In this document: positions 1 to 53,139 of the stretch, one piece after another
How the letters are laid out: each line of letters starts with the position of its first letter
Numbering within the stretch: position 1 is the first letter of the stretch
Notes under the pieces: model-generated
What the model was told of the DNA's origin: nothing
Databases searched by the model: none
The model's input: the letters and a program-made list of their open reading frames with translations, nothing else
Program-made: the position numbers and the translations under genes
Assembly: GCA_025786725.1 (NCBI GenBank)
Contig: JAHLTZ010000060.1
Span: 12,523 to 76,522 of the forward strand
Direction: 5' to 3'
DNA length: 64,000 nucleotides
Source: Syncephalis fuscata S228
Taxonomy: Eukaryota > Fungi > Zoopagomycota

Positions 1-1184
1 ATTTGGGTATTACTCGTACTTACCAACGACTACGTCAGAGCTACTGGTGGCAGAATATGCATAGTGATGTATGCGACTATGTGACATCGTGCACAGTATG
101 TCAGAAGATACGACGAATACACCAACGATCTGGATTATTACAATCACTACCAGTGCCAGAAAAGCCATTCGACTTTATTGCCATCGACCTTATGGGTCCA
201 TTTACTGAGTCTGAACATGGTAATAAGTACGTAGCTGTATGCTGTGATTACACCACGCGTTGGATTGAAGCCGCTGCTATCCCAGATGCAACTGCAGAAA
301 CTACAGTACAGTTCCTGATGAATAACGTTATTGCTAGACACGGCATGCCTAGTGTACTACTTACTGATGGTGGTACTAACTTTACATCTGGATTAACTGC
401 CGGTATTGCGAAACGACTTGGCATACAGCGACGGATTACCTCCGCACGACGTCCACAGACTGACGGACTAGTTGAGCGTTTTAATCATACACTTGCATCG
501 ATGATCGCTAAGTTCACTAGTGATTTCGAAAAAGATTGGGATAAATATCTACCCCTGCTATTGTTTGCATACAGAACAACGAAACAGTCATCCGCTGGCC
601 ACTCACCATTTCAGTTACTATTCGGCCGAGAGGCGACTCAGCCATTAGAAGTAGCAGTTGGCCCTGTTTCAACGGCTCCAGTTCGGTTCCATAAGAGAGT
701 AGAAGAATATGAGGAATACGTCACCGATCTGCAACTCCGACTCAATGATGTCAGGGAAAGAGCCAAGTTAATGATTGAAGCGGCCCAACGTCGGCAGTCG
801 GCTAGGTATAATAAAGGAAGAAGAAAAGAACCATTTAAAGAAGGTGACTTAGTGTGGATAGAAGAACAACTACTAAAAGGTACGAAGTTGAGAAAGATGA
901 AAGAAAGAATGAAAGGTCCTTTTAAAGTGATAGAACAAACGTCAGCTGTCAACTACAGACTCAAGGATTTGGAAACACAAAGAATGTTTTCAGAACACGC
1001 TGATCGAATAATTCCACTTCACACACGACCTGCCCATTTATTATTACCCAACATATCAATTAACCAAATATCATTATCTAACCTTTCCACTAATTCACTT
1101 AATGTGTCAACGGGACGTTCGACACTTAGTGAGGGAGTGATGTGGCGACATATTCAGAACACGTGGTACACGGGTACCACGTAA
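1..1184 (+). mobile_element. Ty3/Gypsy LTR retrotransposon pol 3' end (integrase), truncated by the window start
   Basis: The ORF has the integrase Zn-binding tail (YWWQNM..DV.DYV.SC.VC), the rve DDE core (IAIDLMGP, LLTDGG.NF, QTDGLVERFN) and a GPF motif (KGPFKV). No chromodomain is seen. The ORF runs through the PPT into the LTR. Confidence 0.95.
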
Positions 1185-5195: not shown

Positions 5196-6920
5196 CCTTA
5201 TGAATTGCAAAGTAGTTAAATGAATATTGTAGCTATGTTTGTTGTGAATAATAGCATGACTTCAATTGAAACAAATTTTGCTTTGAAAACTCAAAATATG
5301 AGAGTCAAAGTAGAATTGGGAAATTTTGAAAAGCTAAAAATTCTTGATAAGAAAAAAAAGTTAATTACAATAAATGCAACAAATTCTATTTTAAACTTTG
5401 TTTATTTACATAATCTAATTAATGTAGCAATATTAACGGCAATGCCAATAGTGTTTTATTTGCCAAAATACTTCCAACAACTTACTTGTGGTAAATGTGG
5501 CTAACAAATACAATACAAAAATATGCTCTGTAAGAATTAGTATTAATAATATTGAGCTGGTAGTTAATGTTAAAACAAATGTTTATATTGAATAAATACA
5601 AACTACTAATGAAACAACTATCAAAGTAAATAAAGTGTAATGCAAACAAAATAATTTAATTAATAATTTTTTTAAAATATAAAATTGACCAACAGATAAA
5701 ATTATACTTGTTTGTTTAAAGCGTTTCAGATATCAGATTTAGCAAGTAAACAATTTCGAATTACATAAAAGTATTACTGTCTTAATTAACTTGAGCTAAT
5801 TAGTTGATGTATCAAGCAAAAGTGGAGATATGCAAAATAAAACTGTCAATATGGCATTTATCATTGATAAACTAAAACAATTTACTTGAACATTTATTCT
5901 TAAACGCCACAATAGTCGCTTCAATATTCTAATTTAAAAAAGTCATGGAACATGGCAAAAGAAGCTTAAGAGGGTGTTGTGGTGGATTACTTAAATTACT
6001 TGATTTGTATTAAATCTTATGGTAATTTTATTAACTAAATAAAGATAACCTTTTTTCATAATATTAAGCACAATATTGGTTGTTTAATGTAATTTAACTA
6101 TTAAATAACTATAATAGCCTCACATTTAAACTAAATATCCGCTTTAGTGAAAATGAAACTGAGTGGTGAGTGTCATTGGTGATAAAATATATATTTACCA
6201 TTATTATTGCACTGTAGATATCTATCCTGTATACATATACTATATATCCGCGTATACCACTAATATTGTAAATTGTAAAAGCTATATTAACAAAGGCTAA
6301 AAGTTTACTGCCAGCTGGATTCTTTAATAGATTTTGATTTATTTTGTTCATTACTTTTAGTAAATTGCATTAGTATAGTTTTGCTATTACTATTCATGTA
6401 TTTGTTCTGTCTATTTATTTTATTTTATAGTATTCTATGCTTTATTGCCATGTTTTATTAAAAAAGCTTATTTATTCTAATTTCAGCACAATGTTATGTA
6501 GCTATATGATAATAATAGCTTTGCTACTATCCATACCAATATATGTCTATAGCTTAGACAATATAATTATACACATTTTGTTAATTTAACTATTTGATTA
6601 ATAGTTATTAAGCATTGAATGCAAATAGAACATGGTTATAAATATAGCAATTCGATTGTATATAGTTAAGATGAAACCATAAGTTTATAGTAATAAACTT
6701 GCACAGTTGAATAGAGGCAACTAGATGCAAACATGTTGGTAACATAATGATTCCATTGATTAAAGACTGGATAAACCGGAGCATTGGCCAAAACTTGATA
6801 TATAGATAGACTGGACGGCGTAGTTGTCAAATAGTCTTGCTTTGCACCGAATATATACCTAAAGTGTATTGGACTAGTAGTTCAATTGCGCTACCGATGC
6901 TGATGTCTTGAAACCATCGA

Positions 6921-7895
6921 TTATACTGTATTTACAAATAAAAATATTATATGCCATATAATTAGTGTATAAGGCATCAATATTAATATTAAATAATCGG
7001 TACAATCAGTAAATGGCATAGTTAATATATGGTCAGTCGACGTATAATATAACTTACCGCCTATTAATATTAAGTTATTTATATGCATAATACATGACAT
7101 AATTAGTGCATAGTTAGTTAACATACAACACAACTTACAGTCTATTAATATTGTTATTTATACACATAATACATGGTACATAATTAGTGCATAATCAGTT
7201 GATATATAATATAACTTACCCCCTATTAATAATAAGTTATTTATATGCATAGTACATGACATAGTTAGTACATAGTTAGTTAACATACAACACAACTTAC
7301 ACCCTATTAATATCAAGTTGTTTATACGCATAATACGTGGTACATAATTAGTGCATAATCAGTTGATATATAATATAACTTACAATCTATTAAGTTATTT
7401 ATACGCATAATACATGGTGCATAGTCAGTGCATAATTAGTCAATATATAATACAACTTACATTCTATTAATATTAAATTATTTATACGCATAATACATGG
7501 TACATAATTAGTGTATAATCAGTCAATATATAATATAACTTACTGCCTATTAATATTAAGTTGTTTATACGCATAATACGTGGTACATAATTAGTACATG
7601 ATCAGTCAATAATAGTATAACTTACAACCTATTAGTATTAAGTTATTTATGCGCGTAATAAACGGTACATAATTAGTGCATAGTCAGTCAATATACAATA
7701 CAACTTACTCCCTATTAATATTAAGTTAGAAATACTGTTAGTAAGCATGATAATATAATATATCTATTGTCATCGAAACATACGACGAACCAAAGTTGAT
7801 TTATCATCTACCATAGCTGGTTTAGCATCTACTATGGTTGTAGCGGCTATCAAAGCCACAAGGACGATGCAAATAACGGCAATGGAAAGCTTCAT
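6921..7895 (-). CDS. Secreted peptide precursor (47 aa) built from nine 3-nt micro-exons: MKLSIAVICIVLVALIAATTIVDAKPAMVDDKSTLVRR-SCKYWWDCV
   Basis: Exon 1 is 7895-7784 (signal peptide, propeptide, GTATGT donor). Micro-exons: 7711-7709 GGA, 7628-7626 GTT, 7546-7544 GCA, 7463-7461 AAT, 7386-7384 ATT, 7303-7301 GGT, 7222-7220 GGG, 7141-7139 ACT, 7060-7058 GCG. Each lies between AATAG and GTAAGTT. The last coding exon is 6925-6921 (TA TAA) after CAG. Confidence 0.85.
6975..7728 (-). repeat. Tandem repeat with a 77-83 bp unit, ~9 copies (each unit = intron + 3-nt exon)
   Basis: ACTTAC recurs on the + strand at 7052, 7133, 7214, 7295, 7378, 7455, 7538, 7620 and 7703. The triplet that follows differs in every copy. 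Confidence 0.95.
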
Positions 7896-9129
7896 GGTAA
7901 TATTGATTTGTTGAGACAAACGAATAAAAAAGATAGTAGAGTGTGATTGGTATAAAGTGTATAGTGGTGCGTGTTTAGCAAGGAGTAGAGTGTGATGATG
8001 ATATCGCAGTTGGTTGTGTATATTTTGTGGGCTATTTAAACTTATGGCTATGTAGAGATACTAGTATACTGTAATATATGAGGTATATTTTTGGTGTATA
8101 ATATGAACCAATAAAGCAATCCAGGTGATGGTCTGAAATGCGCATGCACCAATAGATTCATGGCGTGACAGCATGCTTTCCAGCTTTGATTTTGACCTGC
8201 TCGGCATTTACACAAATGACGTAACAATGTTTATAATCCAGTACATATGCGATAGAGATAGATATACTAGCCTGTATTTTTGTCGCATGGTTTAACTATT
8301 TGCTAAAAACAAGTACATTATTTGGTTTTGTAAAAATTATAATGATGTCTTTGCTGCTGCTTCCACTGAATGACTCGACCCCAATGTCTACATGCATACA
8401 AAATAGCACACAACACTGATGCAAAAACAAGTTTAATATATGAAACTAGTATTTTTTTTATATAGCTCTTTACTTCTATACATAAGCTAATTATAATTTT
8501 TAAATTATAAAGCGTGTTGATTGGTACATGTGTGCATTTCATTCGACACTATGCTCATTGTTATGGGATAGCAATTGTTTTGAATTCACAAATGCATCAT
8601 GCCACCTAGACATATTGTGCTACATGTCGTGCAACTACTATCATCCAAATGGCGGTTAATTCAAATTATCTAAAATTGACTATACAATAAGTACTATTTG
8701 TAGGGTGATGCATCACAGCATTTTGAGCAATGGAACACTCCAACATGTCATTTTCGTCGTCAGTTTTCAGTTGTAAACTAGATTGCATCGGATAAATTAC
8801 ACGCAATGCAATATGTAGACACTAGATTAGACACAGTAAAAAGCTCTAACCAATTACCAACAAGCTCGAGTGCATAATGTTAATGGATTGCATATAAACC
8901 GGTAATCATCCAAGGCCTAACTGCTGCTTATATTTCTGAAACTTAATTCTGGCAAGTCAAGCAAGATGGAATATAGAAGAACAAGCCAAAGCAGAAACCA
9001 ATGAAAAAAACAATCAGCAGCTCAAAGGCTTACTGGTTTAACCTATAGCAAATCATTACAGTTATGCTATGCTGAACTGCGTTTATCAAAAGTCGACTGT
9101 TGCTGATGCGACCAGAACGGTAGCAATGA

Positions 9130-16556: not shown

Positions 16557-17583
16557 TTATATTAGCGTTAATAGTGATATATAGTTGGTAATGGTTGCAA
16601 CCCGACTAGAATAGCCTGTTCTAGTTGTATTTATATTAACGCCACTACTGTAGATATTATTTTGCCGATTCACCGTCAAGGTGCTGGAGTCACTGCTCGT
16701 ATGTTTTTTTGTACCATAGTTCACAAGTATTGTCGATGTAATATACCTAGATAGGTTTAGTAATATTCTGGATAATATAAACTACTTACCAATCAATAAT
16801 GTAAAAGTTCGTTGATAAGGGCCCTCCCATTTTAAAAATAATAAAGCTACAACATAATATATTGCAGAAAACTACCAAACACATGGTCTGTATACCGTCA
16901 TGAGCCAATCGCTTCCATGCGTCAGATCCATATTTTTTATAATGCTTATAGGTTACTGCACTAAAGATACCTGAGAAAAGTATATTGCTAGGAATCATCA
17001 TACCGATCCAGTACCATACAACAATATGTTGATGATTAAAAGTGCAACCAGAGTGTTCATCCAGTGTAACATATGACCATCCGTATGCAATAATAAAAAA
17101 GAAAAACTGTGGAAGAATGCAAATGGTGCCGCAAATAGCTACCCAGCGTTGCGACAACAGCACAAGGTAAGCTTTGTAAAGTATAACAATGCTGTTAAAA
17201 AATACAGAAAAACCTATACTCGCCATAATGCACCAAATAAGTATTCTACAGTTCAGCTGGTTGGTTAGTGATGCTACAATAAATAGTATAGTATTTACGA
17301 TGCCTAAAAATGACGGCAGAAAATAGCATAAATCAGATAGTTTGTACGACTGTGCCTTAATATGCCGGAATAGACGTATCAGATTGTAGGCAAATAACGT
17401 CCCCAGCATGGTTGCAAGTGCTAGTTGAATATGAAGTCCCATTATTCGGTTCTGAACTTCAACGTTGGGTGTTTCGCCGCGACTTGATCTCATATTTATG
17501 TAACTAAGAAAAGCAATTTCACCGAGCGGATGCAATGGAATACCAAACAGCTTGGTTGCATTTGCTTCCCATGGTTCATCCAT
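16557..17583 (-). CDS. Multi-pass (about 7 TM, GPCR-like) membrane protein, paralog 1; intron 16789-16747
   Basis: About seven hydrophobic segments and a hydrophilic C-tail. Collinear with paralog 2. Confidence 0.8.
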
Positions 17584-19213: not shown

Positions 19214-20238
19214 TCATAGTAGCGTTAATAGTTATATATAGTTGGTGATAGCTACAAACCGGCTAGAATAGCCTGTTTCAATCGCATTTATATCAGCATC
19301 AGCACTGCGGATATTATTATGTCGATTCATTGCCAAGTTGCTGGAGTCATTGTTTGTGCGTTTTTTTGTACCATAGCTCACGAGTATCGTTGATGTAATA
19401 TACCTAGATAGGTTCTAGCAATGTTTTGGATAATACAAGTTACTTACCAATCAAAATATAAAAAGTCCTTGAGAAAAGTCCTCCCATCTCAAGAAGAATA
19501 ATGAAACAGCATATTAGGTTACAAAAATTACCAAACACATGGCCTGTATACCGTCATGGGCCAATTTTCTCCATGCGTCAGAGCCGTATCTTTTATACTG
19601 CTTGTAGGCCATAGTACTAAAGATTCCCGAAAAAAGTATATTGCTAGGAATCATCATACCGATCCAGTACCATAAAACAATAGAATGCTGGTTAAAAGTA
19701 CAACCAAATTGTCCATCCAATGTAACATATGACCATCCATATGCAATAATAAAAAAGAAAAATTGCGGCAGAATACAGACAGTACCGCAAATAGCTACCC
19801 AGCGTTGCGACAACAGCACAAGTAAGCTTTGTAAAGTATAACAATGCTGTTAAAAAACATCGAAAAGCCTATACTTGCCATAGTATACCAAACAGTTATT
19901 CTACAATTCAGATGGCTCGTTAATGATGCTACAATAAATAGTATAGTGTTTCCAACGCCTAATAAAGACGGTAGAAAATAGCATAAATCAAAAGCGTTAT
20001 AAGGCTGAGTTTTAATATGTCGAAATAGACGTATCAGATTGTGAGCAAAAAAAGGTCCCAGCATAGTGATAAACGCCAGCTGACCATATAATCCTTTCAT
20101 TCGGTACCAAGCATCGATTTCAAACGTTTCACCACCATTTGATTTTGTATTCACAAAACTAAGAAAATTCATTTCACCAAGTGGATGCAATGAAATACCA
20201 AACAGCTCGGTGGCGTTATTCTTCCATTCTGTATCCAT
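19214..20238 (-). CDS. Multi-pass GPCR-like membrane protein, paralog 2 (two apparent frameshifts at ~19820 and ~19525)
   Basis: High similarity to 16557-17583 with the same intron position. The 1-nt gaps may be assembly errors or pseudogenisation. Confidence 0.7.
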
Positions 20239-22798
20239 ATCAACACTATATCCAAGTATAACTGAATTACAAACTATAAAAATTGTGTATTGAAAGGAAT
20301 AAAAAACGCTTAGCATAAAACTAAAGATCCTAAGGCGAAACAATGAGAGCAAAATGCATGGTTTGCATCAACAGGTTTTAACTTAAATAGAAATTTTCTA
20401 TTTACAAGCCTGCTTTTATACAGCATAAAAGGTAAACTATTATAACACAAATACCGGTATTCGGGCCGATTAACCGATAAAACGTATCACCAATGGCGTG
20501 CAGCTATCCGTAATAGTTGGCATAAATATTTCCTATTTACTATTTTCTAATAACAATAAAAATATTTAATATACCCCTACTTCGTTTTTACACAAACTAT
20601 TATTTAATTGGCAAGTGCCTTATTATTTCATCTTGTATTTTAAATTAAAAAATTGCTACTGCTATTAGCTATTCAAGCATATCTTCGAATTGTAATTATA
20701 TGTTATAATCCATTGTTTAGTTAGAATTTTTAACATCAATAGTTTATGGTTATATATTACAAAAACCAATTTGCCGTATTGTTGTTTATTGAATTACAAT
20801 GTTGTTTAATAAATGATGTATTAGTTTATGATTAGTGTCGGATTAAAAATTAAAAAAGCCACAAGACCTTAATGGTATATGTCACTTTTATATTCGTAGT
20901 ACATGGGTAGCATACGCTCAGTATAAATACACACATGACTGCCTATATTTTAGTAAAGCTGTTATATTTACTCTGTTATCGTTTTGCTACTATTTAATCT
21001 AGTCTTTCTACGATAAAACTATTTTAAATACTAATAAAACACACACACAGACTAATTAGCTAAGTAATAATGATAACCGTTTTATAAATAGTCAACTACA
21101 GTCTATCAATATTAATTTATGTAATATTGGCTTCAAATAATTATCATACTAACATATGTTAAGTAGATAAATAGTTAGTATGGATAATTATTTTAAATTA
21201 CAGTTATTGCACTAATATAAATACTAAATGTGAATGTGCTATATAAATGTTTTAGTGTTGGATATTGTTTATTGTAGAATAATTATGTATTAGTTTATAG
21301 CAGCTTGAGCACACAGATTAATTATATACATATTTGCAATAGGTCCATAGACAGTTATGTTTAATTTATTATTGCTTTTGCTTGCATCGAATAAACCTGG
21401 ATAAATATAACTTATTTTGAAGATACAAATATATAAATTAGATTAGTATACAACATATAACCATTTAGTATTTATCATAACTACCGACTTAAGCTTGGCG
21501 TTAGCTTATTACATTGTGTACTATTTAAACAAGCAGTGCAGTTTTAGAATAAAGTCATAATAGTATGACTAAATAGAGTTGTTTACTATGCCATTCACAC
21601 AAGTTTGGCACATATCATTTTTATGCTTAATCGGTTAAGCCGTGTAATCTAGATTTAATCCATCAGCTTATCGCGTTGTAAAGAGCTTACCAATATTAAT
21701 GTCCAGGCAATATAATGACAGCAATAAAGACTCTTTTGCAATAAGTGTACAAGAAAACACACGGTTTACTACATATTACACTAATAGTTACATGTACTGA
21801 AGATTCTACTGGAATGGTTGTAGCTGCTTATACGGAAGACTAAGAGCAATTGCGTAGTACATTGGTCATAGACGGTTTTAGACGACTCATGTTTTATTAC
21901 GACATTTTCCACAACTATCACAATACATAAGCTGGCTTTACCGCTCCTCCGAACCAACACTGCACCTTTATCTTCTCTTTCTACTCTTTACCACTCGATA
22001 TACACTACACTCATTCGCCCTTACTGCCATTTGTTGTCCAATATGCTTTGCACTTGCTAGCCGTCTAATGATTACAAGATCACTGCTGGTTGCTGCTATA
22101 TGTACTAAGGTCGGTAAACGGGCGTGGGAGGTGCGATGCAGTTGTGCCTTTTGGCTATGAAGCACTGGATATGCAGTGTTCTAGAAGCTATATATCACGC
22201 AGTGTGTACTCCAGCATGCTGTAGAAGGCGCTTGTCTGCACATAGTTGATTGGTCTTTTGTATAGTAACATTGGTACGCTTACCGTGTGTTTGTTTGCGA
22301 GGTTGCCTTGCTGAGTATCTGGCTGTTGAGGCGACATAAGGTTTGCGCTTAAGATATCTGATATCTGATGGTGCAGAGCAAATGTTGTTTGGACAACCAC
22401 TACTTATTGCGGTGTAGTCAAGCAGCAAACATCATTGGCACATGTGGCTCATCTCGTTTACTGACCCTCTTCAATAGATATAGATTTGAGAGATATTTAG
22501 ATTTGGCAAGAACAGGACCACAATATGCTGTACAGTCATCCGGTTTGTACTAGTCTATCATTATTTATGTATTTCTTTAAATAAAGCTTTTTTACAAATA
22601 CTAAACAGTTTATTAACTATTTATCGTCATCATGTTCAATTGTGCGAATATTATCGATTTTAGTCATTTGAACATTAAACAAACACTAAATTGGTAATAA
22701 ACTGCTTAAAGTTTGTAAGAAAAAAAACATTATTTTATATTTAATATAACTAATAAACATTTTATTAAAATCTCAAGTATATCAGTAAATTAAGTGCA

Positions 22799-52072: not shown

Positions 52073-53139
52073 TGTTTGCTGATTGTAAAAAAATTACTTT
52101 AATTAATAAATGATATGATATATTTAAAATGCCAATAAAAACTATAAATGAATGTCACTGTACATAGAAATACTATAAATAAATTGAAGTACTAACGAGG
52201 GAGGTGTTCATATAGTAGAGTGAGATATTAAAAATAATTAGCAAAGAGGTAATATATAGTCACTACAACCATTGTATTAGCAATTGTAAATATACAACAG
52301 TAGTAATGACTTTACTGCTAATATTATGTTGAACAATTGTAGTGCCAGTACATAAATGCAGCCTATTACTGTGGGACTGAACAAACATATATTAGCACGG
52401 CACGTAATGTTGCTTCATAGAAATCAAGCCAATTAGTATTTTTGCAATATACATAGAGTGTAGAAAAGTATTAATGAATAAATGTTATTAGGTTTAAAGG
52501 AAAAGAAAGAAAGTACGATGACATAAATTGTAGCTTGTGCGATTAACAGAGTTTATTTATGAAAAGTGGAACACAATATTAGTAAAAAGTAACAATTAGA
52601 ATATGAGTACTAAAAGTTAATCAATCCAAAATGGTGGTATAACATATAACATATTAATAGTAAAGTAACAAATGCAGTAAAGATAAGTGTCATTTAAGAT
52701 CAAAAACCAGTATTATAGAACAAATAATTAACAAAGTGATTAGTATAATAGGAATGATAAATAACAAAGAATAGCAATCAATTGCATAAATAAAAATATA
52801 ATTATAGAATATGCCATTGATAAAACAGTGAGTACAATAAAAAGAATAAATGCCAAACAATAAAAATAAGCATAGTTATAGAACATGTCGACAGTAAAAT
52901 AGTGAGTATAATACAAAAAATAGATAACAAGCAATAAAGACAACTTATTTGTAAACAATGTCAGTAGTAAATCAATGGTTGTAATAATAATAGTAAATGA
53001 AAAACAATAAAATATGTTAATTTATAGAATATGTCATCGGCAAAGCAATGACAGCAGTGATAAAAGGGTATCTTGAATGGATTACTATCTAAAAATTATC
53101 ATTACATAGTGCTTCTAAGTCAACATACGAAAGTGTGGC

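Follow-up and report, generated by a model that had tools for sequence, protein, structure and literature searches.

The window analysed here is a stretch of 64,000 nucleotides from Syncephalis fuscata, a member of the Zoopagales that parasitises other fungi. It carries a gene belonging to a family of about 200 or more genes that encode mostly six-cysteine peptides, and in more than half of the family genes examined the mature peptide is encoded by an array of micro-exons. Real splicing of these chains of 3-nt exons is supported by four independent lines that agree: the frame and cysteine statistics, intronless paralogs of the same layout, a joined contig, and a contrast in sequencing depth. 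At the family level we regard the splicing interpretation as almost certain, and it is very likely that the whole account holds, i.e., that the window gene is a functional member of a family of micro-exon genes for secreted peptides. In the proposed mechanism, a conserved first exon would encode the signal peptide and a propeptide with RR at its end, the mature part would be assembled from 6-38 successive phase-1 exons of 3 nt (rarely 6 nt), each followed by an approximately 80-nt copy of one intron, and a conserved last exon would supply the stop codon and the 3' UTR. The spliceosome would remove every intron, most likely by recognizing each short intron, to give a short mRNA, and the precursor would be secreted and then presumably cut after RR by the kexin of the genome. 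Unequal crossing-over and conversion may change single residues without breaking the frame, giving a variable library on a mostly six-cysteine helical scaffold, and reverse-transcribed mRNA may occasionally replace an array in place by an intronless copy.

The window gene has the following layout:
8033-8040, minus strand: TATA-like box (TTTAAATA), tentatively placed about 30 nt above the presumed start
7896-8003, minus strand: 5' UTR, transcription start probably near 8001-8005
7784-7895, minus strand: coding part of exon 1, ATG at 7895, hydrophobic signal peptide and propeptide
7712-7783, minus strand: intron 1, 72 nt, GTATGT donor starting at 7783
7709-7711, minus strand: micro-exon 1 (GGA)
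7626-7628, minus strand: micro-exon 2 (GTT)
7544-7546, minus strand: micro-exon 3 (GCA)
7461-7463, minus strand: micro-exon 4 (AAT)
7384-7386, minus strand: micro-exon 5 (ATT)
7301-7303, minus strand: micro-exon 6 (GGT)
7220-7222, minus strand: micro-exon 7 (GGG)
7139-7141, minus strand: micro-exon 8 (ACT)
7058-7060, minus strand: micro-exon 9 (GCG)
7061-7708, minus strand: tandem array of eight homologous introns (74-80 nt, 81-95% identical) with micro-exons between them
6926-7057, minus strand: last intron, 132 nt, acceptor CAG at 6928-6926
6660-6925, minus strand: last exon, two coding bases, TAA stop at 6923-6921, conserved 3' UTR, 3' end probably near 6660

The original prediction had placed exon 1 at 7895-7784 with GTATGT as first donor, followed by nine 3-nt exons between introns and a last acceptor at the first AG that follows the last donor. 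All of these positions were borne out on the minus strand, and the joined product is indeed 47 residues long, ending in LVRR-SCKYWWDCV. The introns measure, in order, 72, 80, 79, 80, 74, 80, 78, 78, 78, and 132 nt, so the predicted length of 74-80 nt is correct for the eight array introns but not for the first and the last. Likewise, the claim that no AG lies between donor and acceptor fails for intron 1, which has two earlier AGs (7766-7765 and 7737-7736). Their use would yield introns of 20 or 49 nt and short, truncated junk products, the second is absent from the closest paralog, and both are probably unused. The micro-exons are codon-sized, as had been proposed, but they lie out of codon register: they are phase 1-1, one exon supplying the first base of each mature codon and the following exon the other two, and the final base of exon 1 is the first base of the codon completing the dibasic RR site. 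Hydropathy is 2.5-3.6 across residues 1-20 of the product, and the leader is conserved throughout the family. Micro-exons contribute 27 of the 141 coding nucleotides (about half in the longest copies of the family) and nearly the whole mature peptide. The 132-nt last intron apparently arose by fusion of two repeat introns when the micro-exon between them disappeared along with its splice sites; the paralog L047 still has an exon there. The transcription start was placed near 8001-8005 because the L037 retrocopy starts about 106 nt upstream of its own ATG and because depth in the probable RNA run drops in bin 7957-8073; the counterpart of the TATA-like box in L035 and L047 reads TATAAAT. In the window gene alone, 55% of exon-order shuffles are also open, and its open frame is therefore weak evidence when taken by itself. 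The proof of 3-nt exon splicing comes from the family.

The 29.4-Mb S. fuscata genome contains about 230-260 candidate copies of exon 1 and likewise of the last exon. A genome scan for repeated AG-NNN-GTAAG-type units, proposed as a check in the original prediction, gave thousands of matches: AATAG-N3-GTAAGT occurred 3,227 times genome-wide against 28 in the control, and two consecutive acceptor-N3-donor units 3,270 times against 0. Spacers of other lengths, which had been named as counter-evidence, stood at background genome-wide, with 60 matches against 58 for a 2-nt spacer and 56 against 51 for a 4-nt spacer. Forty paralog loci were fetched, and 26 arrays, including that of the window, were parsed by splice-site scores only, with the reading frame unused. 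These arrays contain 6-38 micro-exons each, comprising 604 of 3 nt (95%), 28 of 6 nt, and 2 of 2 nt, and 643 of the 660 parsed introns are 60-89 nt long; one consensus is common to 491 introns of the family. Four of the 26 arrays (L042, L043, L062, and L069) are frameshifted by a missing base in exon 1 or by a 2-nt exon. In the part of the genome examined, all parsed repeat introns sit in tandem arrays, and one isolated motif (L001) proved to be a chance antisense match. The 6-nt exons, found in L036, L040, L044, L045, L046, L050, L052, L061, and L064-L069, nearly all end in T, and many directly precede the first or last cysteine codon, which suggests that they mark common positions at which one intron is absent. 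Two arrays with more diverged introns form an inverted duplicate (G000:C1:575193-576320 and 609429-610559) and could belong to an older subfamily.

Relatives of the family were also sought outside S. fuscata. None was found in a metagenome pattern scan that returned 82 stretches with one match each. One of these (L097:1-720) has irregular AT-rich repeats with AG-NNN-GTAAG, but it has no leader or regular array and is probably unrelated; its repeats lie upstream of a kinase-like gene on the metagenome contig. Protein searches gave matches only in S. fuscata, to which 15 of 16 profile matches belong, a result that does not imply absence from other Syncephalis because short genes are poorly annotated.

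Across the 521 codons read from the joined micro-exons of the 22 intact arrays, not one internal stop occurs, whereas shuffling the exon order produces 36.2 +/- 4.3 (minimum 20); cysteines number 96, twice the 46 +/- 4.7 expected. The paralogs are related, so the 22 arrays are not independent, and fewer independent events underlie the shuffle and Fisher statistics than their values suggest; the shuffle effect is very large despite this kinship. The true stop lies at or just past the last junction in the intact arrays. In addition, the family introns contain 110 internal AGs against 1075 expected, and they have 24% GC, compared with 47% GC and nearly full entropy in the exons. Taken as non-coding minisatellites with chance splice-like motifs, the arrays would leave the intronless copies as the only genes; the units are 81-95% identical and do score as tandem repeats. 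However, this explanation is largely refuted by the strict 3-nt spacer, the lack of stops, the cysteine excess, the depletion of AG, the divergence of the spacers far beyond that of their flanks, and an exact joined chain in a probable RNA run, and we consider it extremely improbable. The original prediction had stated that gene predictors would miss such genes, and public models of array genes do appear wrong; for example, P0122 has the leader of L061 and matches it over the first two residues that follow RR, but beyond them it differs from the micro-exon product.

X1, the only run found, consists of assembled contigs and is probably RNA, by a guess. Its depths pool paralogs and are qualitative, with summed values of about 149,000 on exon 1 and about 172,000 on the last exon, against 0-2,270 over the array and 0 in 1.1 kb of intergenic DNA beyond the 3' end. 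One X1 contig (depth 85) bridges exon 1 to the last exon via 31 letters, which reproduce, letter for letter, the final base of exon 1 followed by the complete set of ten micro-exons from L047 (G000:C13), and its next 29 nt match the last exon of L047 up to the first difference from the window. Its exon-1 variants, however, are of the type of the intronless L033/L034 and not of L047, and the contig was rejected as a clean L047 mRNA for this mosaic structure. L033/L034 share the first three triplets with L047, and only the last seven micro-exons are unambiguously those of L047. The contig arose by template switching (a chimera), through mosaic assembly, or from a copy that the assembly lacks. 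If it is a chimera or an assembler mosaic, splicing joined seven or more 3-nt exons in a row in the X1 sample; if it is an unassembled copy, a spliced mRNA was copied back earlier. Exon-by-exon genome searches found no intronless twin of L047 among the best 40 candidates for each exon, and the sole other last exon identical to that of L047 among the best 40 candidates follows an apparent degenerate array remnant. This remnant (L047:1-260, with the final 234 nt left out; G000:C13:2566-3060) is without a recognizable first exon.

The array splicing claimed in the original prediction is thus supported at the family level, whereas no spliced contig of the window copy is among the X1 records listed (8 of 379). 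Within the same 8 of 379 records, all depth at 7833 and 7862 carries paralog letters, and about 99 of 185,293 depth units at 6844 carry the window letter. A loose end at 7701 was considered as a partly spliced intermediate and rejected, as it matches the 5' end of a SINE inserted in paralog introns. The lack of a window-specific spliced contig among those listed and the small share of depth at 6844 would be expected if the family is real and the window copy silent or decaying, as a pseudogene or minor allele; the frameshifts in four of the sampled arrays and the loss of one cysteine in the nearest copy, L031, point the same way. However, the window gene has an open frame, 20 of 20 canonical splice sites, and an intact leader and promoter flank, and the near-identical L031 is present as a second, unspliced X1 contig that matches all five diagnostic differences. 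A silent window copy is quite unlikely, and full splicing of the window copy is likely.

In seventeen intronless paralogs, the leader, mature peptide, and last exon form one contiguous stretch, and most of these paralogs share the spacing C-x2-C-x3/4-C-xn-C-x3/5-C-x3/5-C with the spliced arrays. These copies bear on the idea that the arrays are alternatively spliced combinatorial cassettes like those of schistosome micro-exon genes, each gene yielding a pool of peptides because skipping one 3-nt exon fuses two residues into a new one. All exons are symmetric, tiny exons are hard to define, and 38 of 522 single-exon skips create a stop, which would accommodate such skipping. On the other hand, the sole chained contig includes all ten exons, the intronless copies have full cysteine sets, and the cysteine spacing requires near-complete inclusion. 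Use as cassettes, although compatible with the main account, is unlikely.

The intronless L041 and the array gene L035 are sisters (100/98), and both are short W-rich members with similar peptides. Upstream homology to array genes extends over at least 340 nt in most intronless copies and reaches 98% for L041/L035, and the intronless/array label switches about six times on the unrooted tree, at least two of them on well-supported branches. Because upstream flanks are kept and labels change in several clades, the pattern fits repeated in-place intron loss via cDNA, with arrays as the presumed starting state. Loss of introns through cDNA is a reviewed mechanism (PMC3488318). At L037:5336-5900, with a twin in L038, a transcript-length retrocopy with a 9-bp target-site duplication lies inverted about 630 nt from its intronless parent and marks the transcription start and 3' end. 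Additionally, a tRNA-derived SINE, about 410 bp long, and one LINE-like piece occupy an identical position of the repeat intron in ten introns. The SINE, which has A and B boxes, a TAAAA tail, and a target-site duplication, is antisense and about 17 nt after the donor (L035:1135-1624, L036:1371-1839, L040:1897-2393, and L042, L043, L062, L065 with two, and L066), and several of these insertions are independent. A longer insertion at the same intron site (L061:2413-2991) has the 3' end of the SINE but a different 5' part, and is probably the 5'-truncated partner LINE. The SINE/LINE insertions and the retrocopy show that reverse transcription acts on the family.

Close paralogs differ by whole in-frame units, namely eight residues between L049 and L056, five between L050 and L061, and four between L067 and L068. 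The window gene and L031 differ at one intron half and the following exon, which appear to have been overwritten by an upstream unit. Where units are clearly orthologous, divergence per site is 0.049 in micro-exons and 0.012 in the flanking introns (Fisher p 4e-5), about a fourfold difference, and within genes the exon identity is 0.29, near random, compared with an average of 0.76 in the flanks. This contrast suggests diversifying selection on the exons, homogenization of the introns, or both. The repeat unit is an intron plus three bases, and therefore unequal crossing-over or conversion would add, delete, or replace single residues in frame. We give even chances to the view that this repeat is a selected diversity generator, in which minisatellite instability, and possibly the skipping of single exons, would produce residue edits that are always in frame in a 200-gene library of secreted disulfide peptides used against hosts or competitors, while reverse transcription would freeze variants as intronless genes.

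Six cysteines are present in 21 of 33 distinct mature peptides, which contain 17% Cys and have a mean net charge of +2. The original prediction had described a two-Cys aromatic peptide; this is true of the window product, but the predicted two-Cys ring is not conserved in L031, which ends in WWDWD with one Cys. All 43 of 43 copies, arrays and intronless genes together, encode a single mature peptide per precursor, preceded by RR in about 90% of copies, and the S. fuscata genome has one P-proprotein (kexin) domain. Judging from sequence, the peptides would be secreted and cleaved after RR. Searches of Pfam, the ESM Atlas, Foldseek, and VIA gave no significant match for the family peptides, and an eclosion-hormone look-alike at 0.76 was dismissed as noise level. 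In disulfide-linked helical hairpins (alpha-hairpinin, CS-alpha/alpha), paired cysteines stabilise a helix-loop-helix; set beside these, the model of one intronless six-Cys member was helical (pLDDT 75), and its best structural matches had Z of 2.8 or less, none significant. The family signal/pro leader also precedes longer, unrelated mature regions in P0128, P0130, P0134, and P0137 of S. fuscata, which suggests either a reusable secretion cassette or mis-annotation.

We lean slightly toward a use of these peptides as effectors or antimicrobials against the fungal host or competing microbes. The main rival is that they are signalling ligands, for self/non-self recognition, mating, or host sensing, read by an expanded membrane-protein family. 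The genome encodes at least 144 copies (357 candidates) of a hydrophobic membrane protein of about 265 aa that looks GPCR-like by eye, with members on the minus strand of the window at 16786-17583 and 19795-20352 that have no Pfam match. The signal-pro-RR layout also resembles that of fungal pheromone precursors, and the short W/C-rich members presumably recall ascomycete alpha-pheromones. However, mature regions that are cationic, rich in Cys, and quick to diverge are characteristic of conflict peptides, and the membrane family is without Pfam assignment, so signalling is possible but doubtful.

Precursors processed by Kex2, such as those of the alpha-factor type and the KEPs, have a signal-pro-dibasic-mature layout, and conotoxin-like libraries combine a conserved leader with a hypervariable Cys-rich mature part. 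The S. fuscata family has the Kex2 layout, with signal peptide and dibasic site, but unlike KEPs it has one peptide per precursor, no peptide repeats, and no sequence match, the repeat lying in the introns. Introners and introner-like elements comprise thousands of similar introns dispersed into unrelated genes. The S. fuscata family similarly has many highly similar introns; however, in the part of the genome examined these follow one another directly within a single gene family, apparently multiplied together with the exon by tandem duplication and not dispersed into unrelated genes.

The closest parallel in layout is with the micro-exon genes (MEGs) of schistosomes, which are also genes for secreted proteins of a parasite with a conserved signal peptide, tiny symmetric exons, fast mature regions, and poor automatic annotation (PMC10526429, PMC4350168). 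On hydropathy and the conserved leader, the S. fuscata family has the signal peptide typical of MEGs, whereas most of the coding sequence, which in MEGs lies in micro-exons, lies outside them in the window gene. MEG exons are mostly 15 bp (6-81, rarely 3) and their introns 0.1-5 kb (PMC10526429), while in S. fuscata 95% of the exons measure 3 nt, an intron interrupts each mature codon, and the introns are homologous repeats of about 80 nt. MEGs comprise 35 genes, vary by alternative splicing, and are reported from flatworms only (PMC10526429, PMC4350168). In contrast, the S. fuscata family is fungal, with about 200 or more loci, variation by gain, loss, and conversion of units, intronless twins, and no homology to MEGs. 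Fungi and plants splice isolated exons of 1-3 nt (Coprinopsis, 10.1101/2024.05.10.593147; plants, PMC8831610), and Coprinopsis has 27 three-nt exons scattered over 26 genes (10.1101/2024.05.10.593147), compared with more than 3,200 in S. fuscata, in runs of 6-38 per gene. As the original prediction had supposed, open-access papers gave no description of a gene in which homologous introns stand in tandem and each unit has a single exon of codon length. The architecture is categorically new, convergent with MEGs but unrelated and more extreme, and the peptides form a new family of a familiar type.

With as many as 38 successive 3-nt exons joined in order, the arrays are a practical extreme of exon size and density. 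They offer a natural setting in which to study how the spliceosome copes with exons that cannot accommodate both flanking complexes, including the order and fidelity of splicing. Direct evidence is scarce for intron gain and loss by tandem duplication and through cDNA (PMC3488318), and the arrays and intronless twins beside active SINE/LINE elements offer many replicates of both. Under this layout, single residues can be added to a peptide, removed, or exchanged, and genes of this kind escape standard annotation; similar ones could hide as 'satellite DNA' in other genomes. The large, mostly mis-annotated library of small disulfide peptides of this mycoparasite may hold antifungal leads. Elsewhere in the window, positions 3-1184 (plus strand) contain, by eye, a Ty3/gypsy-like integrase fragment, and a 74-bp AT-rich repeat in two copies at 52786-52938 is unrelated to the array by blastn.
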